A DNA stretch of 64,000 nucleotides from Convolutriloba macropyga. Lineage: Eukaryota. The translations under genes and the position numbers were made by a program. This document shows, piece after piece, positions 1 through 49,355 of the stretch. Each line of letters opens with the position of its first letter. Position 1 is the first letter of the stretch. Under the pieces are notes generated by a model. That model worked only from the letters and a program-made list of their open reading frames with translations. It searched no databases and was not told the DNA's origin. The stretch is taken from assembly GCF_964194025.1 (NCBI RefSeq), contig NC_134475.1, positions 44,144,001 through 44,208,000 on the forward strand. Direction: 5' to 3'.

Positions 1-85
1 GCGGGTCTGGCAGCGACGGGCGGGGCGCGAGCGGATCCGGCGGCGACGGGCGGGCATCTGCTCAAGCATCAGCATTTAGTCCTCA
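1..85 (+). promoter_or_regulatory. GC-rich 30-bp tandem repeat with GGGCGG boxes, then an Inr-like TTAGTC; candidate viral promoter or subterminal repeat
   Basis: gcgggtctggcagcgacgggcgggg (1-25) and gcggatccggcggcgacgggcgggc (31-55); TTAGTC at ~77, upstream of the ATG at 150. Confidence 0.35.
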
Positions 86-149
86 GGAATCCATATCAGA
101 AGGTTACAGCTTTTCTAGATTCAGACAACCGTTACAAGATATTAGTAAT

Positions 150-506
150 ATGGAAAACCATGAAATCGGAGGATCCCAGAATCCTCATCGTGTGGGGCCG
201 CAGAGGCAACTGACAACAGCTCCAACATATCAACGGAGTTTTGGATTTGATCCAAGCTACTCCCGAGCTAGATTGTTATTGGATGAAAACTTTTGGAGTC
301 CTCTGTTAGAGGCTATGTCGGACAGTTTACATGGCAGCATTAACGAGGATGAGCATGAGACCGACGCGCATGATGGTGAAGCTGATTCGAGCGGCGAGGC
401 TGGTGATGAGGAAATTAACGATTCAGTTTTTGAAGACGGCATTAGGCACTATCCATTTAATGCTGGAACTAGTGCTAGACGCGAAAGACTCAACGCTGAG
501 AGTTGA
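150..506 (+). CDS. Small acidic hypothetical protein (element-associated)
   Basis: 118-aa ATG-initiated ORF with a D/E-rich C-terminal half; AATAAA at ~562. Confidence 0.45.
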   Translation: MENHEIGGSQNPHRVGPQRQLTTAPTYQRSFGFDPSYSRARLLLDENFWSPLLEAMSDSLHGSINEDEHETDAHDGEADSSGEAGDEEINDSVFEDGIRHYPFNAGTSARRERLNAES

Positions 507-581
507 ACTCTTTTTTGTAAAACTATGTACCTATTATTAGTATTTGACGTGTTTGTTATTTAATAAACAACTTTTTACACC

Positions 582-1226
582 ATGTTAGATCATTTAACAG
601 AAATGAGTAACAGTAAAAAGCAGCGTGTGGAGCTGCCCTTAGGAGAAGTAACGACTGAGAAGAAATTTGAGTTAAAGTCAATACGCAGCGCCGAGCTTCA
701 GGGTGATACGTTTAATTGCAGTAAAGTTCCTCATAATCAGATCTTGTTCCTTGCTCAGTACTTTGTTGTAGTTCTGTTAATAATTTTTTGTCTCGTACAA
801 TTGGCTTTAAAGAACAGTTCACTCGAAAAGTCAATTTTGACCTGCGCCGAAAACACTACATACTTTACAATTTTGAGTACAACAATTGGATACATCCTTC
901 CGGCGCCTAGGCCCAATTCAGGAAATAATGTGACACAAACTGTGGAGGTGACAAACTTAGACGAGACTGATAACGCTATTGAAAATATTTCCTCACCCGA
1001 TTTCAAGTTCAACCCTGAAACCGAAAGTAGATCCCAATCAGTTTGGCGTTTTGTGTGCTGTATAACGCGAAGATCCAATTTGTTGTTCTTGAGTCAAATA
1101 GCTTTCGTACTGATAATGTCTGTAGTTTGCGTGCTGCAGTTATCTTTGAGAGAACCCAACTGTGAGGAAAAAACTGCCTATTTCACAATACTCATCACTT
1201 TCCTTCTACCTCCGATGCAAAATTAA
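582..1226 (+). CDS. Membrane protein made of two tandem copies of a Polinton-type 2-TM module
   Basis: ILFLAQYFVVVLLIIFCLVQLAL...YFTILSTTIGYILPAP is repeated as LLFLSQIAFVLIMSVVCVLQLSL...YFTILITFLLPP. Confidence 0.7.
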   Translation: MLDHLTEMSNSKKQRVELPLGEVTTEKKFELKSIRSAELQGDTFNCSKVPHNQILFLAQYFVVVLLIIFCLVQLALKNSSLEKSILTCAENTTYFTILSTTIGYILPAPRPNSGNNVTQTVEVTNLDETDNAIENISSPDFKFNPETESRSQSVWRFVCCITRRSNLLFLSQIAFVLIMSVVCVLQLSLREPNCEEKTAYFTILITFLLPPMQN

Positions 1227-1252
1227 CGGTGCTGTGTTGGATAAAAGTTGAC

Positions 1253-2144
1253 ATGAACAAAATTATTCCAACATCAGAGCGAATATTTATGTGTGTATGT
1301 GGATCATCTGAGTCGGGTAAAAGTTTTTTAATATACAAGATGTTCCGCGAACCGGTCGCAACAAGTGGTATTTTCCAGCCTCCTTTCTATCAAGTTTTTG
1401 TTTTTTACCGGTTTTGGCAGTCAGTTTATGATCAGATGGCTGCTGAGTGCTCCCCACACTTCAATTTTCACTGCATTTCATCACTGATTACAGAGGGTGT
1501 CGAACGTTCATCCAATGGTATTGACGATTGGTTGAACAAGTTTGTGGAAAACTTTGAACCAGTTACCGGTCAGAGCACACTACTACTGTTTGATGATTCA
1601 TGTGAAGAAGTTTTAGAGAGCAAGGCGTTTGAGAACCTTGCGACAGCCGGTCGTCACAAAAAACTCCATGTGATTTTCATTAAACACAATCTCTATCAAA
1701 AAGGAAAATATTCAGTGACTATTGACAAGAATACCACGCATATCATACTTACGCAGTCTCCCAGAATTGGCAGGCAACTGAAAATTTTGGGAACTGAAAT
1801 TGAATGTGCCCCTTCTAATTTCATCCACTTGCTACCAGTTATCGATGTCAAAACAACAATATGGTCATTTTCTGGTAGATTTAACAACGCAGTGTCCTGA
1901 CGAACTTCGTTTTTGCACCAACATAACAAGTCAGTGTATTGGCAGTCTCTCTACTGGGCAGTTGAATATCTCGATCAAAAACAACAAAGTGGTAAACGGA
2001 AGCCAATTGTCCTGTACAACGTTTTTTAGACCTGCAGTGAAGAGTGGCAGATTGTCAGTTGATTGCATCGATTCACCAGAACTAAGTGAAAAGCATTCAA
2101 TTCTTTTTTCTAATTTTTTGAAACGCTTGCAGAACGGCTATTGA
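1253..2144 (+). pseudogene. A32/FtsK-HerA-like DNA packaging ATPase, frameshifted near 1825
   Basis: Walker A GSSESGKS, Walker B LLLFDD and GRH motif lie in ORF 1229-1900. The expected C-terminus (YGHFLVDL..PDELRFCTNI) continues in the +1 frame (ORF 1800-2144). Confidence 0.88.
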
Positions 2145-2168
2145 TTTTCTGAAGGCTGTTGCAACTCA

Positions 2169-2759
2169 ATGTTTCCTGCTCAATCGCGAAGAACAACCGA
2201 CAAACCAACACAATTTATCCTGCTGCCCATATCTTCAATTGAATCCGAAGATAAAAATGTTGGTAATTTTTCAGCAAAAAGTAACTTAAAAAACACAATA
2301 TCCTCGCAAACAGAAATTAACAATGATGAGAATTCTTGTTCTAGTATTCCCGGCCCATCGGATAAAAGACCTCAGGGTGAAGAGCCAAAAAAAACTTTGA
2401 TTCAAGCTACAAACCCAGCTCCATATTCAAACACTAAAAGCAAGAAAAAGTCAACGGTGAACCTCCCACGGGAAAAAAGCCGTCGAAGAAAAATTCAAGT
2501 TCTGCTTTCCCTGCTGCAAGATTGCAGGAACTTGCGTATAAACTTGGCAAAAAAGTCTATTAGGCTTTCTTCTGGTCGTGCTGAAGTCTCCCTGGTAAAT
2601 TTGTTAAGAAAACTATCCAGTCCCAAGTCGGACTTTGACAAAAGTCTGAAGCCATTTGTCGAAGCTCTGCTACAAGACTACTCGAAAGAACAACTTTCAA
2701 ATCTTTTTCTAAACCCATCTGCGATAACATTTTTGAACACTAAAGACAGTTCGCTATAA
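2169..2759 (+). CDS. Basic hypothetical protein resembling the ORF that commonly precedes Maverick integrases
   Basis: 196 aa; C-terminal LVNLL...FVEAL...LFLNP pattern; its stop overlaps the integrase start (TAATG, 2757-2761). Confidence 0.6.
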   Translation: MFPAQSRRTTDKPTQFILLPISSIESEDKNVGNFSAKSNLKNTISSQTEINNDENSCSSIPGPSDKRPQGEEPKKTLIQATNPAPYSNTKSKKKSTVNLPREKSRRRKIQVLLSLLQDCRNLRINLAKKSIRLSSGRAEVSLVNLLRKLSSPKSDFDKSLKPFVEALLQDYSKEQLSNLFLNPSAITFLNTKDSSL

Positions 2760-3811
2760 TGAGTTCCCTGCTGACTGAAAACGAATATCGAAGGCTCAAA
2801 GGTATTTACACCTCGCTTGATTCAGTTGCCGCTTTTAGCGGGGTGAATGACTTAGTTAGAGAAAGCGGTTTATCAGTGAAACAAGTCAAAGAATTTCTTC
2901 AGTCATCGAAAACTTACACAAAGTTCCGTCCCAATCGAAAACGTTTCAAAAGATTGCGTGTTCACAGTTTGGGGATAAATCATGTCTGGTCGGTCGATTT
3001 GGCTCATATGGATAAACTTGCCGCCGAGAACGATGGTTACCAGTACCTGTTAGTTTGTGTTGACACTTTTTCTCGGTTTTTGCGGGTTCAGCCCATGAAG
3101 GACAAGCAATCTGAAACTGCTTTGGTAGCACTCAAAAAAATGCTTCCGAAAGCACGTGCTGATTACCCCTTAAAAATTTGGGTTGATCAGGGCAAAGAGT
3201 TTTGCGGTGCTTTTAAAAATTTTTGTCTGCAGAATGATATTGTTTTGTATAACACTTTCAATGATTCAAAAAGTGCCATTGCCGAACGATACATAAGAAC
3301 AATAAAGTCAAAGCTTTATAAATATTTCAATGAACGTGAGACAACCAGATATATTGGTCAGCTACAGAAACTCGTCAAAATGTTAAACTCCAGAAGCCAC
3401 CCAATTTTAGGCATGGCTCCAAAGAACGTGCAGCCGGAGCACACAGTTGATTTGTTGAAGAAGAATGTCCCAGACATGCTAAGAAAATGGAGGCCAAGAA
3501 AAACATCTAGAAAATTTAGCAAAAAAAAGCCAAAGTTCAAAAAAGGTCAAACTGTTCGAATATCGCGCATCAGCAAATCAGCTTTTGACAAAGGTTATAC
3601 TCAAAATTTCACCGATGAAATCTTCAAAGTTGCTTCTGTTTCTAGACCCCTTCGCAACGACAACAAAAAAGACACCCGCCCCATCACCTACAGCTTAGTG
3701 GATGGAGCGGGTGAAAAAATTATTGGCAGGTTTTATGAACCGGAACTGGTTGCCTACAGATATGAAGAAGATCGGCATAGAGCCAGGCATCAAACAACAT
3801 CCGTTTTCTGA
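2759..3811 (+). CDS. Retroviral-like (rve/c-integrase) DDE integrase of Polinton type
   Basis: WSVDL, LVCVDTFSRF, WVDQGKEF, AIAERYIRTIK, FDKGYTQNFTDEIF and GRFYEPEL motifs; intact 350-aa frame. Confidence 0.95.
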   Translation: MSSLLTENEYRRLKGIYTSLDSVAAFSGVNDLVRESGLSVKQVKEFLQSSKTYTKFRPNRKRFKRLRVHSLGINHVWSVDLAHMDKLAAENDGYQYLLVCVDTFSRFLRVQPMKDKQSETALVALKKMLPKARADYPLKIWVDQGKEFCGAFKNFCLQNDIVLYNTFNDSKSAIAERYIRTIKSKLYKYFNERETTRYIGQLQKLVKMLNSRSHPILGMAPKNVQPEHTVDLLKKNVPDMLRKWRPRKTSRKFSKKKPKFKKGQTVRISRISKSAFDKGYTQNFTDEIFKVASVSRPLRNDNKKDTRPITYSLVDGAGEKIIGRFYEPELVAYRYEEDRHRARHQTTSVF

Positions 3812-3896
3812 CAGGAAATCATTTTCACTTTTCTGTTCTTGTTGTTTAGTTGTGTGTGTTTTGACAAAAAATTCATTGAAGCATTTTTGTCAGGCG

Positions 3897-4412
3897 ATGG
3901 ACATTAATCATCACATTAATCGCATAAAAACTAACAAACAGGCAATTGGGTCCAGTTCGCGGCAGTATGGAAGCGGTATTGGCTCTGCCATAAGAGTTGG
4001 GTTGAAGAGTTTTGTCATTCCCTTGGCAAAACGTTATGGCATACCTTTAGCTAAGAATTTCATATCGTCAGCTGCTCCTGAGGTGTTGGACATTTTTGAG
4101 GGAAAGAAAAAACCCAAACAGGCATTCAAAAAGGCGATAAAAATTACTGTTAGAAAGCAATTGGGTTCGGGGAGGAGTAAACGTGTACAATTCAGGCAGC
4201 GTAATATCAAAGCTAAAAGCAGAAAAAAGAGGAGAAAAAAATCTAGACAGATGGGTAGGCCTTACAAGAGGAAAATCAAACGCAAGAGAAGAACACCACG
4301 TTATAGTACAAAAAGTACAAGAAAACCACAATCCAAGAAAGCGTCTAGAAAATCAGTCGGACGAACTCGGAGAGACTTTTTCTCATCAATTGTCGACTCC
4401 GCCTCAAAGTAA
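3897..4412 (+). CDS. Basic virion core / membrane-lytic-type protein (adenovirus pVII/pX-like role inferred)
   Basis: Likely start ATG at 3897; QYGSGIG, an amphipathic segment, QLGSG, then a very K/R-rich tail; lies directly upstream of the capsid gene. Confidence 0.75.
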   Translation: MDINHHINRIKTNKQAIGSSSRQYGSGIGSAIRVGLKSFVIPLAKRYGIPLAKNFISSAAPEVLDIFEGKKKPKQAFKKAIKITVRKQLGSGRSKRVQFRQRNIKAKSRKKRRKKSRQMGRPYKRKIKRKRRTPRYSTKSTRKPQSKKASRKSVGRTRRDFFSSIVDSASK

Positions 4413-4443
4413 AATTCACTCAGAACGTAAACTAATTGCGATA

Positions 4444-5787
4444 ATGTCCAATTTGTTCACCGATCCCCCAATATCATCAACTCATTCAGATTTGGAAGTT
4501 TTTTCAACCAGTCATGTATTAGTAGATTTTCAACGCTCCTTTGATGAACAGATCTTTCCACCGACAGATAGCAATGCTCCAGTCCTCGGGTTTGAGTTCC
4601 AGGGTGCGCGTACTGAACTGGGAGGCACAGTCATTGACACTAGGAACATTTATATGAGCTTAGAGTTGTCGCTGGAGAAAATAACTTCCGGTAAAGATAC
4701 AGCTGCAACTATAAGGCCCTATTTTATAAACAACATCGCTCACAGTCTCTGGCAGAACGTCGAAGTATTTGTTGCTGGTACCCAAGTTACCAATGCTAAC
4801 AACTTGTATCCTTTCAAAAGTATTGTTGAAGCTGATTTGTCTTTCGAACCCTCCGCAAAAACAGGAATTCTGGCTTGTCAGGGTTACTCTTACGAACCCG
4901 ACCCCACAGTTTTCAACAAAAAAGAAGAAGACCTACCCATAAAAAGTGGTTTCAATAATCGGCGGGATATTGTCGATGCAAGTAGGCCCTGGAAACATTG
5001 GTTCACTCTCAATGACAGTTTTTTGGCTGGAATTGACAAATACATCCTTCCAGGTTTCCCATTACGAATACGACTGACACGCTCAACAGATCCATTCCTT
5101 CTTCTGCAGCCAGAAGGAGCAGTTGACGCAAAGAACTATACAATTAAGGTTCTTTCTGCCTCGCTTTTTGTTCACATGCTCGAGTTACGAACTGAAACCT
5201 TTTTATCAATTGAACGAGCCCTGAGCAAGAAAGCAGCGCAATACGATTGGCGAGAGGATGTTATGGTTTCATTTGTGATTACTTCTGGAACAAGCATTTA
5301 TTTCCGGGACAACATTTTCAATCGAGCTCCTGTAAGTCATCTTATAATGCTGATGGTTCCAGAGAAAAGTTTTACCGGCAGCTACCATACAAACCCTTTT
5401 CATTTCTCTGATTTTGCTTTGGACACCATTTCAGTTACTCGTGAAGGTCAAACGGTTGGCAACACCCCTTTAGAAGTCAGAACAAGTAATGCAAGGGTTT
5501 ATCCGAACACTCTCCGGTCATTAAACATGACTCATTCAGGCAATGGTATAATTTTGGACGAGTTTGATGATCACTTCACCCCTGTTTTCCGACTGACAGC
5601 AGACCTTAGTATTGATGATAACACAATCAGACCAGAGCTGACCGGTGCCAGACTGGCCATTGAATTAAAATTTCAAAAAGCAGTACCTAACCCAATTCGT
5701 CTGATCCTGTTTGGAGTGCGTCGCTCTGTTGCATTTGCTGATTGCAATAGAGAGGTAGTGAAGAACTCTTCTATATACAATGGTTGA
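4444..5787 (+). CDS. Major capsid protein (double jelly-roll, Polinton/adintovirus hexon-like)
   Basis: 447 aa from ATG 4444; SDLEVFS, INNIAHSLWQNVEV, YPFKS, IDKYILPG, LRIRLTR and GSYHTNPFHF motifs match Maverick capsid proteins. Confidence 0.88.
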   Translation: MSNLFTDPPISSTHSDLEVFSTSHVLVDFQRSFDEQIFPPTDSNAPVLGFEFQGARTELGGTVIDTRNIYMSLELSLEKITSGKDTAATIRPYFINNIAHSLWQNVEVFVAGTQVTNANNLYPFKSIVEADLSFEPSAKTGILACQGYSYEPDPTVFNKKEEDLPIKSGFNNRRDIVDASRPWKHWFTLNDSFLAGIDKYILPGFPLRIRLTRSTDPFLLLQPEGAVDAKNYTIKVLSASLFVHMLELRTETFLSIERALSKKAAQYDWREDVMVSFVITSGTSIYFRDNIFNRAPVSHLIMLMVPEKSFTGSYHTNPFHFSDFALDTISVTREGQTVGNTPLEVRTSNARVYPNTLRSLNMTHSGNGIILDEFDDHFTPVFRLTADLSIDDNTIRPELTGARLAIELKFQKAVPNPIRLILFGVRRSVAFADCNREVVKNSSIYNG

Positions 5788-6256
5788 CAACTTCACTCTG
5801 AGTCGTCTCATTTCAAAGGATCCCGAACTGTCCTATCGATTTCTGGGCTGTTTCGCTGCCGACAATTTTCCCTATGATTTGTCCGACGAGACTTTTTTCA
5901 TTCTGAACACAGCTCCAAGAAACTCACCTGGTGAACATTGGTTGATGGTCACCAAGAAACAACAAACTATATATTTTTATGATAGTTTTGGAAGAAAAGC
6001 TGAACTTGAATTCGCTGATATCATAAACAAAATCCGAAAGTCGAAATGCCGTGTATTTTTGCAAATCTATCCATCTCGGGGCTTTGAACAACCGCTAACG
6101 AGTTCAGCATGTTCGCTCTACTGTCTATTTGTTGCTCATTTTTTATTCAAAAATAATCATAATTTCCCTCGTTGGGCTACAGAGGAAGACATATTACAGT
6201 TTGCTGCATCTAATTTTAATATCAAACATCGGTTATTGAAATTAATACATTCATAA
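5780..6256 (+). CDS. Adenain-like cysteine maturation protease
   Basis: FLGCFAAD, LNT..PGEHW (His), YFYDSFG (Asp) and Q...SSACSLYC (Gln/Cys); 8-nt overlap with the capsid gene. Confidence 0.93.
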   Translation: MVDNFTLSRLISKDPELSYRFLGCFAADNFPYDLSDETFFILNTAPRNSPGEHWLMVTKKQQTIYFYDSFGRKAELEFADIINKIRKSKCRVFLQIYPSRGFEQPLTSSACSLYCLFVAHFLFKNNHNFPRWATEEDILQFAASNFNIKHRLLKLIHS

Positions 6257-6379
6257 ATTATTAAAAACTTGTTTTGTTGCTAAGAGTAGATCGTAGCATT
6301 AAACGTCTCAAACGTACGCATATACATAAATATGTGGGCATCTTAAATATGATGTAACATATATTTTTGTATATGTACA

Positions 6380-6420
6380 TATAAATATATATATATATAT
6401 ATATTAATATTTATGTATAA

Positions 6421-6456
<36 letters not shown>

Positions 6457-6459
6457 GTG
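6380..6459. repeat. (TA)n and (TG)n microsatellites
   Basis: Directly visible. Confidence 0.95.
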
Positions 6460-6517
6460 CACTTGGATTACTATCGAATTTCAAAAACGCATAGCACTCC
6501 GTCTTTGTCAATCTTTG

Positions 6518-7561
6518 ATGCATAAAATATCATGGTATGAACAAAAAACAGAACAGCAGCTCGCAGTCGGTAGCATATTTCGACAATTGCTTGATCTTTG
6601 CCAGACGTTAAGGTCATTAACATTAGGCAACAACGGAGCCATTCCAGCAAATGATGCCGAGGCCATAGTCCGCCAGCTGCGTCGTCTAGCGGACGAGATT
6701 GAGGAAACGGGGGCTGTGGCCGATAGAACAGTTCAGGATGTCCGCCTTGCTCACCTGCAGCGAACTGCACCCTCGCATAGCGTTCAGCCATTGATCGTCC
6801 GAGCGGCTCATGAGACGAACAGATCAACTGTGAGCCCTTCTCTGCCGTCCTTTATCTCCCAAGATCAATCAGACAATCTTGGCCTTGAAAGTCCTAGCGA
6901 GGCCAAATTTTCAGTGAGAACGGCCGACCCTCTGATAATTGATACTGCGAACACTTTGGACGTAGGCCAAAGCACTCCGAGCCGATCTCCTCAGCAAGTG
7001 GAATTAGTTTCCAATGCAAGCCGCCAGCCTCCTCGTCAATTACAAAGAGTAAATCAGTTGTTGTATTTTTGGCAAACACTAAAAGACATCTTTCCTGTAA
7101 ACAGGTTTTGTGACTTTTTTTAGCTGGACGTAATACGTACCAAACTGAATAGGACAGTTCGTCGGAGGATCAATGTTAGAATTGTTGAGACAGGAGAACG
7201 GCTGAACGATCCTCACCCGAATTTACACGACCTGACCGCTATTTAGTTAGCCCAGGCGTTTCAGACCATAAACTTCAGAGGAAATGTCGGAGCTTTCCGG
7301 AATACAAAGAAGATCGGTGTACTGGTCGAAGCGCTTAGGGCCAAGTGTTCGACAACTACAGAGTTTCGGGAGCTCACACAAGTTCATCTGACAGGTTTTG
7401 CTTGCAGGCGGCGGATACAGCAGATGAGCCGGACGCTCAGAGTTCTACTGGAGTATCCACTACTTTTGACAATTGAGTATGAGTGGACTCCAGGGACAAT
7501 CTGGGACAATATTCCGCTCATTGAGCTGGTCTGCCAAAAAACTCGCAATTCTTGCAGATGA
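6518..7561 (+). pseudogene. Orphan two-exon ORF (6518-7048, 7124-7561) with an internal TAG at 7244
   Basis: A 75-nt GTAAAT...TTTTTTAG phase-0 intron removes the stop at 7121-7123. The same frame then continues ~145 codons to TGA at 7559 with one in-frame TAG. Confidence 0.5.
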
Positions 7562-7593
7562 ACGAGCTTCCAGATAGTTTATAACTGTTTAGA

Positions 7594-7787
7594 GCCGCCT
7601 ATGGCGGAAGAAGAGCCACTGTGCTCAACTATATACACAGCATTTTAGAAACGGTTTAACATTGTAATTTATTTATGCCTCGAGAAGAGGAAGGAGAGCC
7701 ATGAGCTCATATTTTGTAACATGTGATATGTAATTGTCTTTTCATAATATAAAAGCCTCGTAAGGAGGAAGAAGAGCCAATGTGCTC
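7594..7787. repeat. Three regularly spaced 32-33-nt double-hairpin repeats with unique AT-rich spacers
   Basis: Units at 7594-7626, 7677-7708 and 7755-7787; spacers of 50 and 46 nt. Confidence 0.85.
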
Positions 7788-7898
7788 TATTTTTTCTTAT
7801 AAACGTTTTTCAAATTTCTCAATATTTTTTAGACCGATTTCAACAAGTAATCTCTGCAGCATCGGTTCGCGATTAGTAATTTATTTTTCAGAGTTGTT

Positions 7899-8480
7899 AT
7901 GATAAACATTTTAATCATCGGAGCGTCCAACATTAACCCCAATTTCGAAATTTGTAAATGCCCAGTTTTTTGCCAAAATTCTTACCATATCCACTGCCAA
8001 TCACAAGGAGTTAATCTTAAAATTTCCAGTGCTCCGGGGGCACGATTCAACCACACAATAAAAAATCCATCTAACTTAATTGCGGAAGCTTTGTCCCCTA
8101 ATTTTTATCCTGATTTCATTATAATCTATTCTGATATTGCCCTTAATTCTTTTGAGCAACATAATAATTACGAAGGATGCAGTGTGACTTTTTGTAAGAA
8201 TGAATTGTTAAGATTAACTTATATTTACAAGACCGTTAAATTTTTAGTTCACCTCAGTCAACCCCGTTCGACGACTCCAAACAATTTTAATTGGGATTTT
8301 AATTGGCAAATTTACCACAAGGCCAAATTCATACCGAACCTCCATCAAAAATTCATTAAAAACTCCCTATCCCAAAATAAACCCTCAAAAAAATTCCATA
8401 ATGTATTATTTCTCCATCTTACCCCCGAGGCAGTTGCCAAAAATTTACAAAACCTTATCAACACTGCAGTCAGGATTTAA
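7899..8480 (+). CDS. SGNH/GDSL hydrolase-fold protein (esterase/lipase-like)
   Basis: Block I ILIIGASN, block II SAPGARF, block III PDFIIIYSDIALNS and a block V-like LFLHLT, in canonical order over 193 aa. Confidence 0.65.
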   Translation: MINILIIGASNINPNFEICKCPVFCQNSYHIHCQSQGVNLKISSAPGARFNHTIKNPSNLIAEALSPNFYPDFIIIYSDIALNSFEQHNNYEGCSVTFCKNELLRLTYIYKTVKFLVHLSQPRSTTPNNFNWDFNWQIYHKAKFIPNLHQKFIKNSLSQNKPSKKFHNVLFLHLTPEAVAKNLQNLINTAVRI

Positions 8481-8577
8481 TTGGTAAGTTGCATTCATTA
8501 ATAGAGCACAGTCATCTAGTTGTTTATTCAGTCATTTCCATATAAGGTTTGGAATATGTACTCTGATTCTTATTCAT

Positions 8578-8650
8578 GGGAATATGGGCGCCGATTCGTG
8601 CTTGACTCTGATTGGCTGACGAGTCAGTGCCTATCGGCGCCCATATTTCT
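8578..8650 (+). ncRNA. Candidate pre-miRNA-like long hairpin
   Basis: Perfect 15-bp inverted repeat aatatgggcgccgat/atcggcgcccatatt plus an inner TGACTC/GAGTCA stem; extra G-U pairs form only on the + strand. Confidence 0.4.
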
Positions 8651-8786
8651 TCTGGCACTTGTCAAGATCAATCCCAAACCGATGCGGCAAACATTTAGCA
8701 TTTTGCAACAGTAACATCCGCAACTGTAACTCCAACAGTAACATCCGCCAACTATCACTTTTGCGAAATTCCTTGTCAGCAATGAG

Positions 8787-11055: not shown

Positions 11056-14000
11056 TCATAAATCACTACATGAGAAAATTCTTTCCAACGTTGTAGCTCT
11101 AAATATCTTTTTGAGTTGCTGTTCACTTTCTGGGAAGTTTGTCAGCAGGAACGCATCAAAGATCGATTTGAGCAAATCTGCGCCACCATGGTCAGATAGA
11201 TTCACAAGCAGAATATCTATCGTGTAAATACTGAGCATTGATGACACATTTAACGACTGCTGCTCGCTTAGCAGAAATTTTATCAGCGCGTTCGAAACAA
11301 GAGAATATACGTTGCTTTTGTGCTTACAGACACCAAGAATAACAGATAATGTTCGCTCTACAATTTCAGAACAGCTCAAATTCAACTGTAAGAAATTGAC
11401 TAATGGTTCTATGATTCTATCAAGGTTCACGTCTAGTTTGTGAGAAAGCTCTTCTATCAACTTCAAATGACACATAGCCTCTTCTGAATAGCTTTGTAAA
11501 CCCACAGAACCACAGAAAAACTTGCGGCACTTTTCTAATTCTGAACAAGATGTCAAATTAGTATTACCCGAATTCGAATTTGAGGTCGTACCGGTAGCTT
11601 CCGTTTCCAACAGTCCTAAACAGTTCATTAAATGTTTGTTTTTCTTCGGGTTTTCAACTAGGAAACTTGCGTAGTTTTTGACAGCCCGTCTGGCGAGAAT
11701 ATGATCGTACTCAAAGTACCTGTCTATCAATTCATAAATATCGTTCTTCAATTTCCGGTTGAACTCATTAGTCAAAGATGTGAATGAAATCACTGTTCCA
11801 AGAATAGTTTGCATGATCTCCGGGAATCTCTTGTGTGAAAAAGCCGAAGGCGCCAATCTCAATAAGATTCGAACCGCTGCTTTAAATAAATCCGCAATTC
11901 CGTCTCGTTTAAAACCGGTCCAACTACTTCTAAATTTTCCCTTCAGCAAAACGGCCAATAAATCAAGTTGGCGATTCGCAAAAACAGGATGTGTTGATGC
12001 GAATTTCAGAATTAAATTTGAGGTCAAATGCTGCGTATCGAAATCAAAATTTGTCAATGATTCCAAAGGCAATATCAAATTATACGCAGTAAGATCAGCT
12101 TGAAAAGAATTTTGATACTTTTCTGTTTTCATAACTGCAAATTTTTCAGCAAACGCGGACAAAGGAACAGCTGTGTTTAGGTAAATCAGAATTTGAATAC
12201 TTTTTCTTATTCGCTCAGTTTTGAAACTATCACACAGTTCGATTAGATCGCCAACGATTTCATCAATATTTGAACTTTTCTGCAACTTCAACAATAGTAC
12301 AATTCGAGATTGAAGCAAATCTAAGTAATTTTTGTCCGTTTTCATAACTTCGGCGCATTCTTGGTAGACCAGTATTAACAGTTTCGAAGTCGCTTCCATG
12401 TCCAGACACAATACCTGCTCCGAAATCTTGTTTAGCAAACGCGTTTCTCGGCCTTGGAACAGTTTAGGTTGCATTTGAACAGCAGTTATGAAATCCAGAA
12501 CTACTGTAGGATTTATTGTTGTCTCCGTTTTATCCAAATTTTGTAGCAATGACTCTACAGTCAATTGCACTGATTCCCACGAAACGCTATGAATCAAGTT
12601 TGCGATCAAAAAGCAATGATATGAAGAAAAGTTATGCTTCCCAGAAAAAAGAATATTCCAGAGATAATCAGAATGCTTACGAGTAGTTTCCGGGTCACTG
12701 ATTAAAACCAGATCCAAAAGTTTCCCAGTACAAGAAAATGTTTTCTGGGACATATATCCAATTTTGCCAGATGCCTGGTCAAGTAAAGATTTGGAGCTTA
12801 AACTCAATTTTTCTTCTGGCTCTGGTGACTTTGGTTGCATGTTCACCTCTTCATTTTCAACATGAATGTTCAACAGTTTATACGATCGATGAAATTTAGT
12901 ATTGGACAACGCCTTACGCAACTGGTCTGTAAATTTGTTTAACTGCCGGAACCCCAGATTTTTCCCAATGTTCATAACGAAAGCGGTAAACTCGTGAACG
13001 CTTACATTATCGACCAAACTAGCGACAACTTCTTGAACTTTGATTACCTCGCATAAAGCATTACTAACATCTGAATAGTCCGTTATTTGAGCGCTCAGTT
13101 TTGGTAAAGTAAGGCTTTGACCAGGGTGCTTTACTATAATTTGAGTAATCAACATTGCCAAGCTGTCGGAATCTTTGCAATCTTTCAAGTTAAGAGGATC
13201 GTCGATGACTTCGCCCAAAACATCAACATCAATTTCATCGATTTCCTGGACAATATCGTCTGCAGTTTGGCTCCTCGACTTAACAGAAGTTGTTATAACA
13301 GACGTATAAGCGCACTCTAATTTAGGCCCAAAATTGGTAATTAAATCTTGCTCCAAAGCCTCTATATGATCTTCTAAATCTCTAAGCGCGTCTTTAATTC
13401 CATTCAGTGAATATCCTTCAATTCGGGTCAGAATCGTATCACTTAAGCTTGTGCTTAACCCGGCAAAGGTTAAACTTTTCACTAAATTCGAAATATCGAT
13501 CATTTGGTAGACCCATTTCGAAAATAATGTTTTACAACGCAGGGCACAGCTCATGAGTAGACTATCCGGTAATATACTTTTGACAACATCAAATGATAGT
13601 TCTTTCAGTGGAAACGTTTCTAAGGAATCTTCGCAATCAACGCTCATCAGAAACATGGAAAACAGGCACGTTACGACGCTGGATGGAGCGGATAACTTTG
13701 TGCCTTTTATGGTCATAACATCACTTGTACTCGAAATTGGTTCCCCCTTTGTATCATTTGAAAATATTGCAAATATAATCCTGCAACAAGAAGGGAAAAC
13801 TGCGCTCAAATCATTACAGTACTTCAGACTCCTTTCAAATATTGAACGTCTGCATACAAAGATATCCGCAAATAATATTATCGAGCTTGCATCATCAACA
13901 TTCTGCATAGCAATTTGCCGCACGGCAAAACTGAGCGCCGAAGCAACCAATTTAAGATCAAATTCCTTTTTCATAGTTTTCAGTGCCATTGTCAAAAGAT

Positions 14001-16527
14001 TCTCACCGATTCCAAGCATAACGTTCAAGGCTTTCGACACACTTTCAAACAAGTGCTCGTGCTTGACCTGATCTCCTATCACACTCTTTAACAGTTGCAA
14101 GGTTAGATTACTTGCAGCTTCTTTCCTGAACAGGTCATCCGAGGACGTCAGAGCTGCTAAAAGGTAGGCAAATACTTTGGACGAATAGACATTTTCTGAG
14201 ATTGCACTTTCTAAATGTTGAGTCACCATCTCTACCTTCTCAATATGCGACTCACTAGACGTTGACAAAGTCGATTCCATCAACAAGAACTCACATAAAC
14301 ATTGCGGCGGGAGGGCACCAACATCCGACGACATTATAATTTGGGACAACCAGGATGAACCACTACCTGCAGGTCCAGATGCCAGGGTTCGATTCCGGTT
14401 GAGAACATCAAGCAAATAATCATTTGTCCGACTGCTACATAGAGCATTGCCAACTTTCAGAGAGTTACAAATCATTTTCAAATGGGAAAGAAATTCTGGA
14501 CTTGGCAACCGAGTAGGACCCTTGGGATCCATGTATGTCAACTGGGATATCAGAAGACTGGAATCCGCTGTGATAGTTTTTCTAGCTAAATGACACTCAA
14601 ATGATATTATCTCATTTCGCTCCTGCTCAGCAATTCGCATTTCATATCTTCTCAGTTCTTCCCTATTTACATTTGATGCGCTAGGTGGGTAGTTGAAGTC
14701 GGAAGTCAGACACATTTCCATCAACATTTTCAACATAGGTAGTTTTTCCCAACCGATATTTGCAACTGTATCTACATTACTTCCGCTTAGAATAAGCAAT
14801 ACGGTCCACGCTTTCCAGAGTAAACTGGACACAGCCAGTTTTGGTTCCTCATAACTCGGGGGCAATGAAATGCTCGCAGGTTTGCTGTACACAACTAGCT
14901 TAAACAGTTGGTCGGTGAATTCCTGTGCGTGAATTATCGTTATCGAATTAAGCGGTGACCGCGTGACTAATCCCTCGATAAAATTCATGGAGTTTGAAGA
15001 GTTCAAAGGATAGTCTGGATCCAGGCCCATATTGATGATATTAAGCAGACACGATTCCAGAACACCGGATTCAATCAACATTCGATGACATGTACTTTGG
15101 TCCGGTGGATATGGATCTTGCTTTAGATACGTATCCAACGGTTCAAACAGCAGCATTTTATGCATTAACTGATTATATTGCTCGGGTGAAAAGTAGAGCG
15201 AATGCGCTTTGACCCATTCAACGAAATGCGCAATTATCTGAGCAACTGTTTTCTGTGTTTCCTCAACCACGTCCAAGTTCAAACTGTTTCGCTCGTGCTC
15301 TTTCTTCGCTTTCGCTGTTGCAAAAACCTCCCGGCTGTTCATAGGCAGACAAATGAACAGCGCATATGTAGCAAGGTCCGCAATGCTTATCAAGTATTTG
15401 GATAGTTGTAAATTTTCTGCTTGCATTTTGGCTTGCACTTCTGGTTGTATGTCTAAAAGTTGCGCGCAGAATTGGTCAAACTTAATTTCGAGTCTCTGGC
15501 TTTTAACAATATCGCGCAGAAAAGTCCTAACGGCTTTTGAGTAATCGTCTTTTTGGTACAAGACCAACTGAAAAGCAAAGGCCAAGTGCGTTGTGACCAA
15601 TATACTGTTTGACTGAAACATTTGCGATATAACATACATGTTATTTGGATTCCTGGCACCTCCTGAAAACTCATTGAAGACAATATTTCGCAACAGAACT
15701 TTGTTGATCTCGACATTTTTGTCACTCATTTCTTTAATACTCAGCATCAACGCTGTTCCAACGTTTTTATTTTTCGGTTTGATTCTTATCAACATCGATA
15801 CAATCTCGGTGTTTTCAGCAGAGTCAACTTTCAGAGCGTTTTCACTTGAACAATTCAAACAAACCGCATTTAGTAAATCTTGCGAAGGTCGGTACAGTTT
15901 TGTATTGTGAAGCCAAGCCTCCAATTTTGAGCATGCAAAATGTCGTATCCCCGGTAATCCACAAGTTACAGCTAAAAGCTGGATGGCATTCTTCTGTTGC
16001 AAATCGATCTGATTGGTCGAAAGCGAGCAACCACTACCCGCTTTCCCTCGAGCGAAAATCTCGTTCACCGAATCGATAACCAGTTTGCACAGAAGGTCTT
16101 TGTTATCGGGGTATCGGTCGATGTATTTAGCATCAACAGAGTTTGGTGATATTAGGAATGGAATCGGCGACCCTATAGGCGAAACTTTTGATTCTTCTTT
16201 CAAACTATTAGTTGAATTCCCGCCACTAACAAACAGTCTAGGTCTTTGCACAGTCGAGGAGCTGAGAGACTCAGCAAGGCCTGGTACAATTTGAGTATTG
16301 AAGGAAGTAATCAGATTAAACACGAAATCTTTGGTAAGAGCCGAGTTAAGATCTGCCCAAATACGTTCCTGAGTAAAATCATCAATGAAAAGTTTGATGA
16401 ATTGAATAGGCCAATCAGCGTTCGAGGATTTGAGGCAGGATAAGAGAATGTTGCAACACAGCGCTACTGCAACGTTGTTTGGTCGTTGTTTAGTTGTGGT
16501 TCCTCCTGCGTTCCAACTCGAGTCGCG
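11056..16527 (-). CDS. INTS1: Integrator complex subunit 1, coding exon 2 (5472 nt)
   Basis: WPIQFIKLFIDD..ERIWAD, KLEAWLHNTKLYRPSQDLL, ARNPNNM, LLWKAWTVLLIL, PMLKMLMEM, FECHLA, DPKGPTRLP, LPPQCLCEFLL, TGKLLD and HPVFANRQL motifs; TTTCAG acceptor at 16528, phase 0. Confidence 0.93.
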   Translation of the reverse strand, partial: RDSSWNAGGTTTKQRPNNVAVALCCNILLSCLKSSNADWPIQFIKLFIDDFTQERIWADLNSALTKDFVFNLITSFNTQIVPGLAESLSSSTVQRPRLFVSGGNSTNSLKEESKVSPIGSPIPFLISPNSVDAKYIDRYPDNKDLLCKLVIDSVNEIFARGKAGSGCSLSTNQIDLQQKNAIQLLAVTCGLPGIRHFACSKLEAWLHNTKLYRPSQDLLNAVCLNCSSENALKVDSAENTEIVSMLIRIKPKNKNVGTALMLSIKEMSDKNVEINKVLLRNIVFNEFSGGARNPNNMYVISQMFQSNSILVTTHLAFAFQLVLYQKDDYSKAVRTFLRDIVKSQRLEIKFDQFCAQLLDIQPEVQAKMQAENLQLSKYLISIADLATYALFICLPMNSREVFATAKAKKEHERNSLNLDVVEETQKTVAQIIAHFVEWVKAHSLYFSPEQYNQLMHKMLLFEPLDTYLKQDPYPPDQSTCHRMLIESGVLESCLLNIINMGLDPDYPLNSSNSMNFIEGLVTRSPLNSITIIHAQEFTDQLFKLVVYSKPASISLPPSYEEPKLAVSSLLWKAWTVLLILSGSNVDTVANIGWEKLPMLKMLMEMCLTSDFNYPPSASNVNREELRRYEMRIAEQERNEIISFECHLARKTITADSSLLISQLTYMDPKGPTRLPSPEFLSHLKMICNSLKVGNALCSSRTNDYLLDVLNRNRTLASGPAGSGSSWLSQIIMSSDVGALPPQCLCEFLLMESTLSTSSESHIEKVEMVTQHLESAISENVYSSKVFAYLLAALTSSDDLFRKEAASNLTLQLLKSVIGDQVKHEHLFESVSKALNVMLGIGENLLTMALKTMKKEFDLKLVASALSFAVRQIAMQNVDDASSIILFADIFVCRRSIFERSLKYCNDLSAVFPSCCRIIFAIFSNDTKGEPISSTSDVMTIKGTKLSAPSSVVTCLFSMFLMSVDCEDSLETFPLKELSFDVVKSILPDSLLMSCALRCKTLFSKWVYQMIDISNLVKSLTFAGLSTSLSDTILTRIEGYSLNGIKDALRDLEDHIEALEQDLITNFGPKLECAYTSVITTSVKSRSQTADDIVQEIDEIDVDVLGEVIDDPLNLKDCKDSDSLAMLITQIIVKHPGQSLTLPKLSAQITDYSDVSNALCEVIKVQEVVASLVDNVSVHEFTAFVMNIGKNLGFRQLNKFTDQLRKALSNTKFHRSYKLLNIHVENEEVNMQPKSPEPEEKLSLSSKSLLDQASGKIGYMSQKTFSCTGKLLDLVLISDPETTRKHSDYLWNILFSGKHNFSSYHCFLIANLIHSVSWESVQLTVESLLQNLDKTETTINPTVVLDFITAVQMQPKLFQGRETRLLNKISEQVLCLDMEATSKLLILVYQECAEVMKTDKNYLDLLQSRIVLLLKLQKSSNIDEIVGDLIELCDSFKTERIRKSIQILIYLNTAVPLSAFAEKFAVMKTEKYQNSFQADLTAYNLILPLESLTNFDFDTQHLTSNLILKFASTHPVFANRQLDLLAVLLKGKFRSSWTGFKRDGIADLFKAAVRILLRLAPSAFSHKRFPEIMQTILGTVISFTSLTNEFNRKLKNDIYELIDRYFEYDHILARRAVKNYASFLVENPKKNKHLMNCLGLLETEATGTTSNSNSGNTNLTSCSELEKCRKFFCGSVGLQSYSEEAMCHLKLIEELSHKLDVNLDRIIEPLVNFLQLNLSCSEIVERTLSVILGVCKHKSNVYSLVSNALIKFLLSEQQSLNVSSMLSIYTIDILLVNLSDHGGADLLKSIFDAFLLTNFPESEQQLKKIFRATTLERIFSCSDL

Positions 16528-17940
16528 CTGAAATGAAAACAAGTTAATAAAATTATATCACTACCTTGAGCCACAACGCTATAAGGCTCACTACCTCCAT
16601 TCAACCAGAAATAGGACTCGCGTTCAAAAAAATGAAACGATTTAATAAACTTTCTCATATTCGCATTGAAAACATATTTTATACTTTTTAAAATTTTAAA
16701 ATTATAAACGCAGGCTAACAAAAAATATACGACATTGTTCACGTAATGGAAAAAATTTGATGTGAGATAAATGCAATCGTTGGAGGTCGAGTTCAATGTG
16801 AATTGAAGTAAAATAGGTAATAGATAATTACATTAAAGCCACAGCCGCTCTTAGTGTTTTACTTGCTTACACTGAGAGGAGACAGAATAGATCAATAACA
16901 TTCATAATCAACCTGACAATAAAATGGTTCCAGAATGAGTCAGATCAATGAAGCAAATGTTCAATTGAGTACCAGCAACATGAGTACAGTTTAAGGATAG
17001 ATGGAGTTCAAAAAAAGACAAAATAGAGAAGTGAAATGAAGACAAGACAGACAACGTGTAACAATACAACACCTTGATGCTGCTCGCACTTTTCTAGCAA
17101 ACATAAAACCTCATCAGCTTAACTTAACATGCATCATGTTGATGAAAGCATAGTCAACAACTTTCCTAAATAGCTCGCAACAGAATTAAGTATCGTAAAT
17201 ATTGATGAACTTAGCTGGCAGATCACAAGAAAATAGCTACGATAGCTTCATAAAGCTGTAGTCTCAAAAATCAATGAAAGAGAATATAGATCTCAGAAAA
17301 AGTAAACTAAAAAATGATACAGATTTGATTCTTGTGCTTAAACACTGCCCCCAAATAGCCTTAAAATAGATTGAAACATCCTGGTTTGATCCTAACTCCT
17401 GGAATCAGTCATTATAGGAGTTGGGGAAGTCATTTTGATAGACTGAGGAAACTCATTTGTGACCAACTATTTAATCACACGGATGAACAACAATCTGATC
17501 TTAAATTTTCGCTATTAAATTATATGGATGGTCATCATATGTCACGGGGAGAAAAATTTTCGTACGTTTAATTGCTTTCAAACGAATTTCGTATCGACTA
17601 TACTTGTCCAATCTCGTTTTTTAAATGCGATATTTCTCTTGATCGATATTCCATTGACGCTTCTGACTATTCGTCCTTAAAAATCGGTCAAGCTCAGAGC
17701 ATTACATCGCCGAGTAGCTCTTTTAGAGATTTATTAATCTCTAGTGTACAGTTTACCAATGCTGCTGAGGAAAAAGTAATGGTGTGAAGGGCTTTTTGCC
17801 TTTTGGTAATTTGGATTCCGCTTAAACCCCCTCCAATTTGAGCCTCTCTCACACTTCACCCCCCCCCCCCCACACACACACACACACGGCTACGCCACCT
17901 AAGACCGACACCATCAAATCTCTCACAAGAAAAAAACTAG

Positions 17941-43263: not shown

Positions 43264-46200
43264 TTAGCTTGTGTTGATTGGTATCTTTCTGAGTTTTACT
43301 ATGGGTCTGTTTGAGAATTTGCCATTTCCTGTTTTTATTTTGGCTACTCTGACCAAATTGTCATTTCCTGTATATGTTTCATGCACAATTCCCAGAGACC
43401 ATGATAAGGGAGGACTGTTGTCATCTGTGATGTACACTAAATCTCCTTTTGTCAGGTTTTGCTTTTCGGCCATGTTTTTTGACCTGGTCTGCAACTGGGA
43501 TAAATATTCAGTTGTCCATTTCTTCCAAAATTCTGCTATGAGTTTCTGCAAGTATTGAAAGCGCTTATTTGGATCTTCCTCATCTTTTGTTTTTGGGATT
43601 GGGGAAACAACCAAAGGCAATTGATGATTATGAAAGCCGGTTAATAGCATAGCAGGGTTTAAGGGATAACTGTCTTTTGCATCATCTGAGACAACTGTGA
43701 GCGGTCTCGAGTTAAGTACAGCTTCGACTTGGCATAGCATTGTATACACTTCATCCAAATAGAGGTTAGCTGTTATTCGATTTGACTCCTGCTTCCCATA
43801 GTCCACCAAAATGTGAAGCTTTGGCTGGAATTGTTGACCAGTTGATGCCTAAATCTAGAACAGCTTGAGGTAAACAATCAGTTCCGTATTTCTCTCTCAG
43901 TATCCTTTTGAGTTTTATGAGATCATTCAATGATCCTATAAAGTTTGTACCATTGTCTGAAAATATGCGTGCTGGGCATCCTCGTCGAGAAATGAACCGT
44001 CTGATAGCTTTCATGCATTCCTGTGTATTCAGTGCCTTAGTGACATCCAAATGAATGGCTTTTGTAACGAAGCATACGAAGACTACCAAATAACATTTGG
44101 CTTCAGTCTTGTCACATCTGTAAGGCATTGGACCGGCGAAGTCTATGCCCACGTTACTGAATGGTGGAGCAGGGTTGACTCGTTCTTGTGGTAGGTCGCC
44201 TAAGAGTTGAGAGAGGTTACGGCCATTAAACCGAAAACATGTGATGCAGTTTCCAACTATAGACCTTGTCAGCGTTTTCACTCGAATTATCCAGAACTTC
44301 TGACGCGTATGAACAACTGTTGCGTTTACGCCTGAATGTAACACTCGCTGATGACTGTCAAGTACGATTAACCTCGAAAGATGATTTTTGTAAGGCAAAA
44401 TTGATTGAAATTTGGCAGATTCATTCAAGCAATCTGCTGCTACTAGACGTCCACCAACCTTTAAAACTCTTTCCTCATCTATGAAGGGATAAAGTTGAAG
44501 GATTCTCGATTTTCGGCTTATGCTTTGGCTTTTCTGCAATTTGTCTATTTCATCAATATAGTTTTGCTTCTGCACATCTCTAACAAGCATATTTAATGCT
44601 TGTCGCTTGAATTCTTTTCTCTCGATAGGCTTTTTAAGCAAAATATAAGCAAACTTTAGAATGCTTTGCTACTCTTATTGCTTTGTCGAGACTTCCGTAA
44701 CGTTCAATAGGGAATAATTGGTCGATATGGTGATTCGACTGCTCTATGTTTTGATCATTGAGCGGGTCGTTTTCCTCCCCCACAGGTTCGGGAATAGTGC
44801 CCGAATCTATTGTTAATATTTGGCTCCGCACTACTTCCTTCTTTACTTCTGTTGATTGAAGAATTTCTGGTTGTTTTGGGATAGTCAGCTTTCTATCAGA
44901 GAGCCATTGTGGGCCTTCCGACCACATTCTAAGGGATGAAAGCTGTTTTGCTGGCACCGGGCGCGTAGTATGATCGGCCGGATTTTCTTCTGTCGGCACG
45001 TATCGCCATTTTTCTGGTTGAATTATTTGTTGGACTTTGGCCACACGGTTTGCTATGAATGTTGAGAATCTGCTAGGGGTAGAATTAATCCAAGCTAAGG
45101 CAACTGTTGAATCACTCCAAGCATATATTTCAGTTGTAAATCCATTTTGGTTTACCGTTGTCGGAACTGTTTGTATCATCTGCGCTCCTAGAACCATTGA
45201 GCACAGTTCAAGTCTCGGTATGCTGAGTGTTTTTCTGGGCGCTAATCTGGACTTGGAACATAGCAAGGTAGACTTGGTCTGAGATGCTCCCAGTGATCGG
45301 GCATATATAGCGGCTCCGTACGCTTTTTCAGAAGCATCGCAAAATAAGTGAAGTTGCATTTTTTCAATAGCGAAGTTGGCCACAAAGCGTGGTATACGTA
45401 GCTCAGATAGATGATGTAATCCAATCATCCAAGCTTTAAATTGGTCAGTTATGGTTGCCCCAACATCATCATCCCATCCAATTTCATGTTCCCAAGTCAT
45501 TTGGAAAAGAATTTTGCATTGAAGCGTTACTGGTGTTAGGAGACCGATAGGGTCAAATATTTTACCCATATTGCTAGATATTGCTCTTCTGGTGGTTATA
45601 TGTACATTTTCAGGATAGGGCAAGTTGCTGTTAACTGAATCTATCAACATTCTGTTGTTAGATGAAGTAAAAGTTGATTTTTTACCTTCTTTATTTTGAC
45701 CAGTTTTTTGATTCGGCTGCGGCTTTGGCGTTCTTTTGTCGAACATAGGTTTGTTGGACCTGGAATCTTTTTGATCGAAAAGTTTCGGGCATGGTTCAGT
45801 TTTCGAATGGTGTTGTTTTTCACTACCAAATTTTTCATTTTTTGCGAAAATTTTGTCCCCAAACGTGACCACTAATTTTTGTTTTTCGGTTTTTTGGTTT
45901 TCTGTGTTTGAGTAGTTATTTTCAGGTTCTGAAAGTTCGGATGACTTCGGGCAGCTATCAGTATCTGAGGCAACATCTCGGATATCACCAATGGGCGTTT
46001 TTTGCAGATTTTTGTCGACACCAGTTTTGACCGTTTTTTCGCCTTTTTGTGGGATTTTTGATGTTTTTTCTTGATTAAACCCTGTTAAAAATTGCATTGA
46101 ATTAATCGGGCAAACATGGGGAGTTGCATGATTAGAAGCGTGGGAGTCCAATAAATGGATTTCCTTTAGTTTTTTACAGTCAAGGTTGACCACTAATTGT

Positions 46201-49125: not shown

Positions 49126-49146
49126 TTTGTCGGCGGACCAGAATAA

Positions 49147-49355
49147 TGTACGTTCGCGATAGCTGTTTACTATGTAAATAAAGGATTGAATTAAATATTG
49201 AATTGTCTTTTGAATCAAGAGAAATTAGTAGCTAAACAAAGCGAGTGAATTTTAAGCGGGAAAATTTGCGTGTGTTTACACAATTGAACAAAATCAGCCT
49301 TAGCGAGTAACATCAAAAGTCATTACATGCGTTGAGTAATTTATATGTTTATACA
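49147..49355 (-). repeat. 5' LTR (209 bp)
   Basis: Direct repeat of 42756-42968, followed by TSD CTACC. Confidence 0.95.

Follow-up and report, generated by a model that had tools for sequence, protein, structure and literature searches.

The window, a stretch of 64,000 nucleotides from the acoel Convolutriloba macropyga, begins inside a Polinton, the right part of which occupies positions 1–8653. The genes of the element in this part encode an A32-like ATPase (a weak Pox_A32 match), an rve integrase, a 534-aa ORF in the capsid position with relatives at the MCP position of other Polinton loci, and a Peptidase_C5 protease; two further genes are a 236-aa orphan ORF and, in terminal position, an ORF of 193 aa. 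The protein-primed polymerase (DNA_pol_B_2) lies directly upstream of the window, at 4409–6487 of locus L003, in which L003:1–18072 corresponds to window positions −9418 to 8653 and covers 18 kb of the element. It was called in two pieces of 229 and 404 aa, which could reflect one break or an intron. With polymerase, integrase, ATPase, protease and capsid all predicted, the carrier is by its gene set a Polinton/Maverick. The right end of the element is placed at 8653, because beyond this position seven copies no longer agree in their flanks. A subterminal palindrome of 67 nt (8580–8647) with perfect 15-bp arms and a DNA fold z-score of −6.1 is situated 6 nt inside this end; both arms are exact in most sibling copies, and one arm only in two of them (L006 and L008). 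The 9.4 kb that precede the window contain no inverted copy of the right terminus, and classical terminal inverted repeats (TIRs) were not seen there. Beyond the Polinton the INTS1 gene (11056–16542, minus strand) starts ~2.4 kb from the end of the element, as a single 1828-aa open frame that agrees at 100% identity with integrator subunit 1 of Convolutriloba macropyga. Further downstream a Pao/BEL-type LTR retrotransposon (43264–49218, minus strand) contains DUF1759 (gag-like), protease, RT, Peptidase_A17, integrase and DUF5641 in four overlapping ORFs.

The last two genes of the Polinton are both on the plus strand. The 236-aa ORF (6413–7123) belongs to no family, in agreement with its earlier description as an orphan, and no Pfam family was assigned to it. 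Its frame stays open for a further ~145 codons to 7561 except for two in-frame stops, the ORF's own included, and the extension (7124–7561) shows the highest variability among sibling copies, with 25 of 438 sites variable. The ORF may be a decayed longer gene, and if the tail to 7561 is coding the true intergenic region may be confined to 7562–7898 (337 nt). A (TA)n-rich palindromic tract at 6357–6434 lies just before the start of this ORF and overlaps it. The terminal ORF (7899–8480) encodes 193 aa and is likewise an orphan. It had been labelled as an SGNH protein in a first-pass annotation of the window, and this label was not borne out: the protein has no Pfam match and no PDB sequence match, and its AlphaFold model is unusable (pLDDT 33).

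The intergenic region between these two genes, the last of the Polinton, contains an array of three similar units that span 111–305 nt upstream of the terminal-gene ATG, on the same strand as all the element genes. From the end of the array it is 104 nt to an acceptor-like site and 111 nt to the ATG. The 193-aa gene separates the array from the right terminus of the element (8653), which is 866–1059 nt away. The units are located where the first-pass annotation had placed them, with starts 83 and 78 nt apart. Apart from the two flanking ORFs, the element has a standard Polinton gene set. Unit 1 (7594–7627, plus strand; AGCCGCCTATGGCGGAAGAAGAGCCACTGTGCTC, with a leading A at 7593) is 62% GC and scores 52.2 bits against R1, a covariance model built from the three units. 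It is composed of a 5-bp stem CCGCC/GGCGG closed by a 3-nt loop, the linker AAGAA, and a 4-bp stem GAGC/GCTC with a 6-nt loop. Unit 2 (7677–7709, plus strand; GCCTCGAGAAGAGGAAGGAGAGCCATGAGCTC; 58% GC; 47.9 bits) has CCTC/GAGG as stem 1 (4 bp, 5-nt loop), the linker AAGGA, and GAGC/GCTC as stem 2 (4 bp, 5-nt loop). Unit 3 (7755–7787, plus strand; GCCTCGTAAGGAGGAAGAAGAGCCAATGTGCTC, then TATTTTTT; 55% GC; 55.1 bits) again begins with a 4-bp CCTC/GAGG stem and a 5-nt loop, and continues through the linker AAGAA into a 4–5-bp stem, (A)GAGC/GCTC(T), with a 6-nt loop. Reading along the same plus strand, spacer 1 (7628–7676, 49 nt, 22% GC) carries GTAAT at 7664 and TATTTAT at 7670–7676. Spacer 2 (7710–7754, 45 nt, 18% GC) starts with TATTTT, carries a GTAAT at 7730 and closes with TATAAAAG (7748–7755). 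Finally, an AT-rich tail (7788–7898) joins unit 3 to the terminal gene and contains TATAAA at 7798, GTAAT at 7847 and 7876, and TTTTTCAG ending at 7891.

The array is confirmed as a real, non-random repeated signal on one strand of a Polinton intergenic region. Allowing up to one mismatch, a 12-nt core pattern has three matches on both strands of the 64 kb, all of which are the units; 0.33 would be expected by chance, and three matches were reached in 0/100 shuffles. Similarly, GAGC-N3-7-GCTC occurs four times in the 64-kb window, always within 7426–7787. The GC content is 55–62% in the units as against 18–34% in the spacers and flanks. Pairwise identity between units is 79–85%, while the spacers and flanks align with one another no better than shuffled sequence (p 0.35–0.83), which argues against a plain decaying tandem duplication. 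The first-pass annotation had come to the same view, and had rightly described the spacers (49 and 45 nt by the boundaries used here) as unrelated and AT-rich. Conservation peaks in a 13-nt block, which takes in the end of stem 1, the linker, the 5′ arm of stem 2 and part of the loop that follows. Since this block crosses the boundaries of stem, linker and loop, it is sequence that is conserved here and not pairing alone. Four of six positions in the stem 2 loops are common to the units, so that the earlier picture of a constant GAGC/GCTC stem with differing loops is correct for the stem; the loops are not free. The remaining GAGC-N-GCTC palindrome, GAGCCGGACGCTC (7426–7438, plus strand), is situated 187 nt upstream of that of unit 1 and is invariant in nine copies of the element. 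It has no match to R1, and is possibly the relic of a fourth unit.

Protein clusters in the ENA assembly ERZ25071359 suggest ~20 sibling copies of this Polinton. Eight were fetched and, together with the window, give nine copies that are ~98% identical. The three units and identical spacers are present in all nine, with scattered single substitutions only: 2/100 sites are variable in the units, 4/94 in the spacers (each in one copy) and 4/111 in the tail. The comparison of unit number and spacer content between copies, which the first-pass annotation had proposed, revealed no difference beyond these substitutions. In their share of variable sites the units do not differ from neighbouring non-coding DNA (2/100 versus 8/237, p 0.73), and as the copies are ~98% identical the invariance of the units proves nothing about selection. 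One of the two substitutions within units breaks a pair; the other changes A-T to G-T, which is pairable in plus-strand RNA. R1 matched nothing other than the units, whether in the window, the 9.4 kb that precede it, loci L010–L013 or the sibling loci and their flanks, and by the same model the motif is found nowhere else in the sampled ~18 kb of the element. In the DNA sampled, the units are thus not a dispersed host repeat, a possibility that had been raised at the outset. A second partial block (integrase, capsid, protease) is present directly upstream of the full block in one sibling locus (L004:1–8400), which points to tandem or nested Polinton copies.

Relatives outside this family are remote. 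Among MCP relatives the identity jumps from 98% to 55%, with no intermediates in the collections searched, and those of the 193-aa ORF consist of its own cluster and four remote matches, one of them on a 520-bp contig without context. No homologue of the array was detected in the public collections scanned. Loci with a two-core pattern were retrieved from IMG/VR and JGI metagenomes and rejected: among the matches listed they reach at most 24.5 bits with R1, against 48–55 for the units, and they resemble chance matches or repeats in coding sequence, the two-core pattern being too loose. The motif is absent from all four related Polinton loci (L010–L013), three of which also lack the terminal gene. 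One of these loci contains a 24-nt direct repeat (L011:12900–12956, ERZ25074608; 92% identical, 33-nt period) after the post-protease ORF, the sequence of which is unrelated to the array units.

The L010 locus belongs to a second Polinton family in this genome, with an MCP that is 55% identical, and has a two-exon homologue of the terminal gene, the only clear homologue of the 193-aa ORF. Upstream of this homologue, in a place equivalent to that of the array, two tandem long hairpins with compensatory differences are found (L010:8285–8450; z −5.0 and −3.1). They are known from one copy, have no Rfam match, and show no common sequence or architecture with the array units. Simple factor sites they cannot be. 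They give a hint that foldable repeats before the terminal gene may be a recurrent theme.

When folded alone each unit forms two hairpins (−10.4 to −13.1 kcal/mol), which bears out the stem1-AAG(A/G)A-stem2 plan of the first-pass annotation. The z-scores of these folds are modest (−1.5 to −2.3, on either strand), and the fold of the whole region, in which units 2 and 3 are partly re-paired, does not differ significantly from shuffles (z −1.15). The core pairs are Watson–Crick in all three units (8/8). Seven of the eight are invariant and one is compensated, being G-C in unit 1 and T-A in units 2 and 3; stem 1 of unit 1 has one extra, fifth pair. The earlier statement that stem 1 varies but stays paired therefore stands as regards pairing, and the variation amounts to the compensated pair and the extra pair in unit 1. 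A covariation shuffle control on the three-unit alignment was not significant (184/500). In simulations in which the differences were placed at random, all eight pairs survived five or seven differences with P 0.087 and 0.034, respectively, and the double-sided change had P = 0.016. All 12 between-unit differences leave the pairs unbroken. These simulations (P 0.016–0.09) moderately favour the paired positions, while the seven pairs that never vary are uninformative on pairing either way. The compensated evidence amounts to a single pair, and the units may be either hairpins in RNA or single-stranded DNA or sites in double-stranded DNA. The Rfam search that had been recommended gave no match, either at the E-value threshold on 7200–8200, where the best matches by E-value were far under threshold, or at the gathering threshold on the whole window, and a tRNA scan found none. 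The stems of 4–5 bp are also far from the ~20 bp or more by which a miRNA-type hairpin cluster was defined.

The AT-rich DNA around the units carries several short motifs in a repeated order. TATA-like boxes abut unit 2 (TATTTAT) and unit 3 (TATAAAAG), and TATAAA follows unit 3 after 10 nt. Unit 1 has no directly adjacent TATA-like box; the nearest, TTTATAA, is 9 nt before it. The repeat between units 2 and 3, recorded by a repeat finder as family D2, extends into the TATA-like boxes. A donor-like GTAAT is found 21–60 nt after each unit, and four of the 13 GTAAT in the 18-kb element (7664, 7730, 7847 and 7876) fall within 337 nt, a clustering in 7562–7898 that has P 0.002–0.004 in shuffles. 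The same GTAAT is the donor of one clear intron in the L010 homologue of the terminal gene. The acceptor-like TTTTTCAG ends at 7891, 7 nt before the terminal ATG. TTT(Y)CAG precedes the ATG by 5–28 nt in 6 of 17 element genes, compared with 3.1% of random 40-nt windows, which suggests that genes of the element may receive a spliced or trans-spliced leader. Acoels trans-splice spliced leaders, which in S. roscoffensis affects 30% of genes (PMC9911081). Directly after units 2 and 3 there is a TATTTT; the distances of these two copies to the acceptor-like site are 98 and 176 nt. This hexamer conforms to the nematode Ur motif TAYYTT (PMC7668243); it occurs four times in the 337 nt and is common in AT-rich DNA.

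The explanation that we prefer, tentatively, is that the units are tandem promoter/leader modules for the terminal 193-aa gene and function chiefly as double-stranded DNA. A module would comprise a TATA-like stretch rich in AT, then a GC-rich core of 34 bp, and the donor-like GTAAT 21–60 nt downstream. The core would present two short dyads with half-sites about one helical turn apart and a purine-rich linker between them, on which a sequence-specific and probably dimeric factor of the host or the element would dock. Transcription would start in or just after the core. Whichever module a transcript came from, splicing would remove the remainder of the region up to the acceptor at 7891, shortly before the ATG, with a GTAAT as donor in cis or with a spliced leader added in trans. 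The hairpin potential would be a by-product of the dyad symmetry. Factor binding, start sites and splicing are in this model predicted from short motifs of a kind easily found in AT-rich DNA, whereas the anatomy of the array, its position, the enrichment of its motif and its invariance between copies are directly observed. The model is consistent with the location of the units on the same strand as the terminal gene, in the only non-coding region upstream of it, and with their nature as GC-rich islands in AT-rich DNA that are abutted by TATA-like boxes in the case of units 2 and 3. The 13-nt conserved block fits sequence-specific recognition better than pure pairing, and both acceptor-like and donor-like sites are available in a host lineage that trans-splices. 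Units and spacers are moreover kept in nine copies, and the module is specific to the terminal gene. Against promoter/leader modules stand the lack of a directly adjacent TATA-like box at unit 1, the L010 long hairpins at the equivalent place, and the finding that units of sibling copies are no more conserved than adjacent non-coding DNA (p 0.73). The compensated pair and the 12 of 12 pair-sparing differences are, in addition, what a hairpin predicts and what a protein site does not need.

The main rival, which we hold to be somewhat less likely, is that the units act instead as folded nucleic acid. The hairpins could form in a plus-strand transcript, in an intercistronic region or outron, where they would mark the upstream 3′ end or help leader addition at 7891 in a Ur-like manner; alternatively they could form in single-stranded DNA during protein-primed replication. 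Such folding would account for the eight Watson–Crick core pairs with one compensated and a fifth in unit 1, for the avoidance of pair-breaking differences (P 0.087 and 0.034, with 0.016 for the double-sided change), and for the one sibling substitution (A-T to G-T) that would still pair in plus-strand RNA. The TATTTT after units 2 and 3 matches the TAYYTT of the Ur motif (PMC7668243), the host lineage trans-splices and acceptor-like sites precede many element genes, and the two strong L010 hairpins have compensatory differences and an equivalent place. Other observations speak against folding. The stems are 4–5 bp long and fold with z −1.5 to −2.3 (−1.15 for the whole region), seven of the eight pairs never vary and the shuffle control reached 184/500, the peak of conservation runs across the linker rather than following the pairing, and the second of the sibling substitutions disrupts a pair. 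TATTTT turns up often in AT-rich DNA and stands ~100 nt from the acceptor, not ~50; the L010 hairpins are unlike the units in sequence and architecture and come from one copy, and there is no Rfam match. The narrower proposal that the units are true double-hairpin signals used in cis, as RNA or single-stranded DNA, for the processing of a multi-gene transcript or as a mark for the packaging ATPase, appears unlikely to us. A lack of any function, with the units as a relic of local GC-rich duplications or of a decayed gene that is unchanged in a young family, is improbable. It is in keeping with nine ~98% identical copies in which the units are no more conserved than their neighbours, and with the resemblance of 7124–7561 to decayed coding sequence and the presence there of a fourth palindrome like stem 2. 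Uniform decay of an 80-bp duplication would not, however, leave units 79–85% identical with unalignable DNA between them; the differences also avoid the paired positions and the linker, and an ordered layout of TATA-like box, unit and GTAAT recurs.

Two further explanations rank lowest. A packaging or other DNA-level signal, recognized by element proteins such as the A32/IVa2-like ATPase, is quite improbable, even though genes for an A32-like ATPase, a protease of the adenovirus type and a capsid-like protein are present in the Polinton. The units are bipartite, in the same orientation and near one end only, with none in the other ~17 kb sampled, and recall the A-repeats of adenovirus, which have a conserved bipartite motif around a free centre and are bound by IVa2 and L4-22K (PMC5033970). 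The adenovirus domain, however, lies 220–400 nt from the end and is sensitive to distance (PMC5033970), whereas the array is 866–1059 nt from the end and behind a whole gene. Its units are also GC-rich and spaced by 78–83 bp rather than 21 bp, and no virions of the element are known. The first-pass annotation had suggested, as a possibility, a repeat-spacer small-RNA cassette. Such a cassette would resemble CRISPR or a small-RNA cluster, with the spacers carrying the information and the hairpins directing processing. This we consider barely credible. The array shares with such a cassette its outward form only, namely hairpin-capable repeats alternating with unique spacers of similar length. 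The proposal is largely refuted by the invariance of the spacers among nine copies, since unit number and spacers are identical in copies that were inserted independently. In addition, there are three units only and these are 79–85% alike rather than identical, their stems are far too short for substrates of the Drosha/Dicer type, Rfam and tRNA searches gave no match, and no recognizable processing gene is adjacent, the flanking ORFs being without a Pfam family.

Several other candidates were considered and rejected. A mimic of the spliced-leader RNA was sought with the S. roscoffensis leader (PMC9911081), which has no match in the C. macropyga loci examined. As coding repeats the units would give acidic peptides in two frames that run into stops, and the differences between units are non-synonymous. 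A Pol III small RNA bounded by a TATA box and a T run would be ~10–15 nt. A rule by which a hairpin follows every gene is not seen in the element, and the array is too distant from the right end for TIRs or subterminal transposase sites. Bacterial-type intrinsic terminators are fitted by stem 2 of unit 3 only, with two sites in 3 kb against 2.3 expected, and the host is an animal.

Comparison with better known systems gives partial likenesses in each case. The SV40 early promoter contains three 21-bp GC-rich tandem repeats upstream of its TATA box. The array is similar in having a few GC-rich units of the same orientation beside AT-rich TATA-like DNA, a few hundred bp before a gene, but its units are 34 bp long, ~80 bp apart, separated by unrelated AT-rich spacers and made of two mini-palindromes each. 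There is no sequence likeness to the SV40 repeats. Baculovirus hr regions serve as enhancers and putative origins, with a ~30-bp palindrome per unit and several loci per genome, and a dimeric factor is presumed to bind their units. They resemble the array in their imperfect dyad units, a period of ~70–80 bp and their location in AT-rich intergenic DNA; in contrast, the array has two 13–14-bp dyads per unit and a single locus. The adenovirus A-repeats are AT-rich (TTTG-N8-CG), 21 bp apart and located 220–400 bp from the end, before the first gene (PMC5033970). Same-orientation bipartite repeats near one end are common to both systems, and adenoviruses have a packaging ATPase and a protease with relatives in Polintons. 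The array differs in its motifs, its 55–62% GC, its 78–83 bp spacing and its position 866–1059 nt from the end behind a gene. Finally, the Ur element of nematode operons also combines a short stem-loop with a following hexamer of the TAYYTT type, between genes of the same strand and upstream of an acceptor, in a lineage that trans-splices. The host here is no nematode, though, the acceptor is ~100 nt or more away compared with ~50, and the motif is short for AT-rich DNA, two further copies of TATTTT being present elsewhere in the array region. We know of no SL2-type leader in acoels.

Almost nothing is known of the transcription and cis signals of animal Polintons/Mavericks, and no paper describing such signals was found in the literature searched. 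The array is real and has not been described before; as far as present evidence goes, it is a cis element of an ordinary kind, and what is unusual is its carrier. To judge from its sequence the array is probably a gene-control signal; a new kind of RNA cassette is unsupported. If the units were true double-hairpin signals they would be the first example from an animal Polinton of a structured signal that acts in cis, and the long hairpins of L010 would be an analogous solution. If they are ordinary promoter elements, they would be useful for annotation and unsurprising. For C. macropyga a chromosome-level genome has been published and directional poly(A) RNA-seq is public (BioProject PRJEB75559; PMC13650328), and the repeated module and the acceptor-like sites provide concrete places to inspect in existing data. 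A young family with at least nine copies in a sequenced host is thus convenient for distinguishing whether Polinton genes have a promoter of their own, share a leader or make use of host trans-splicing.
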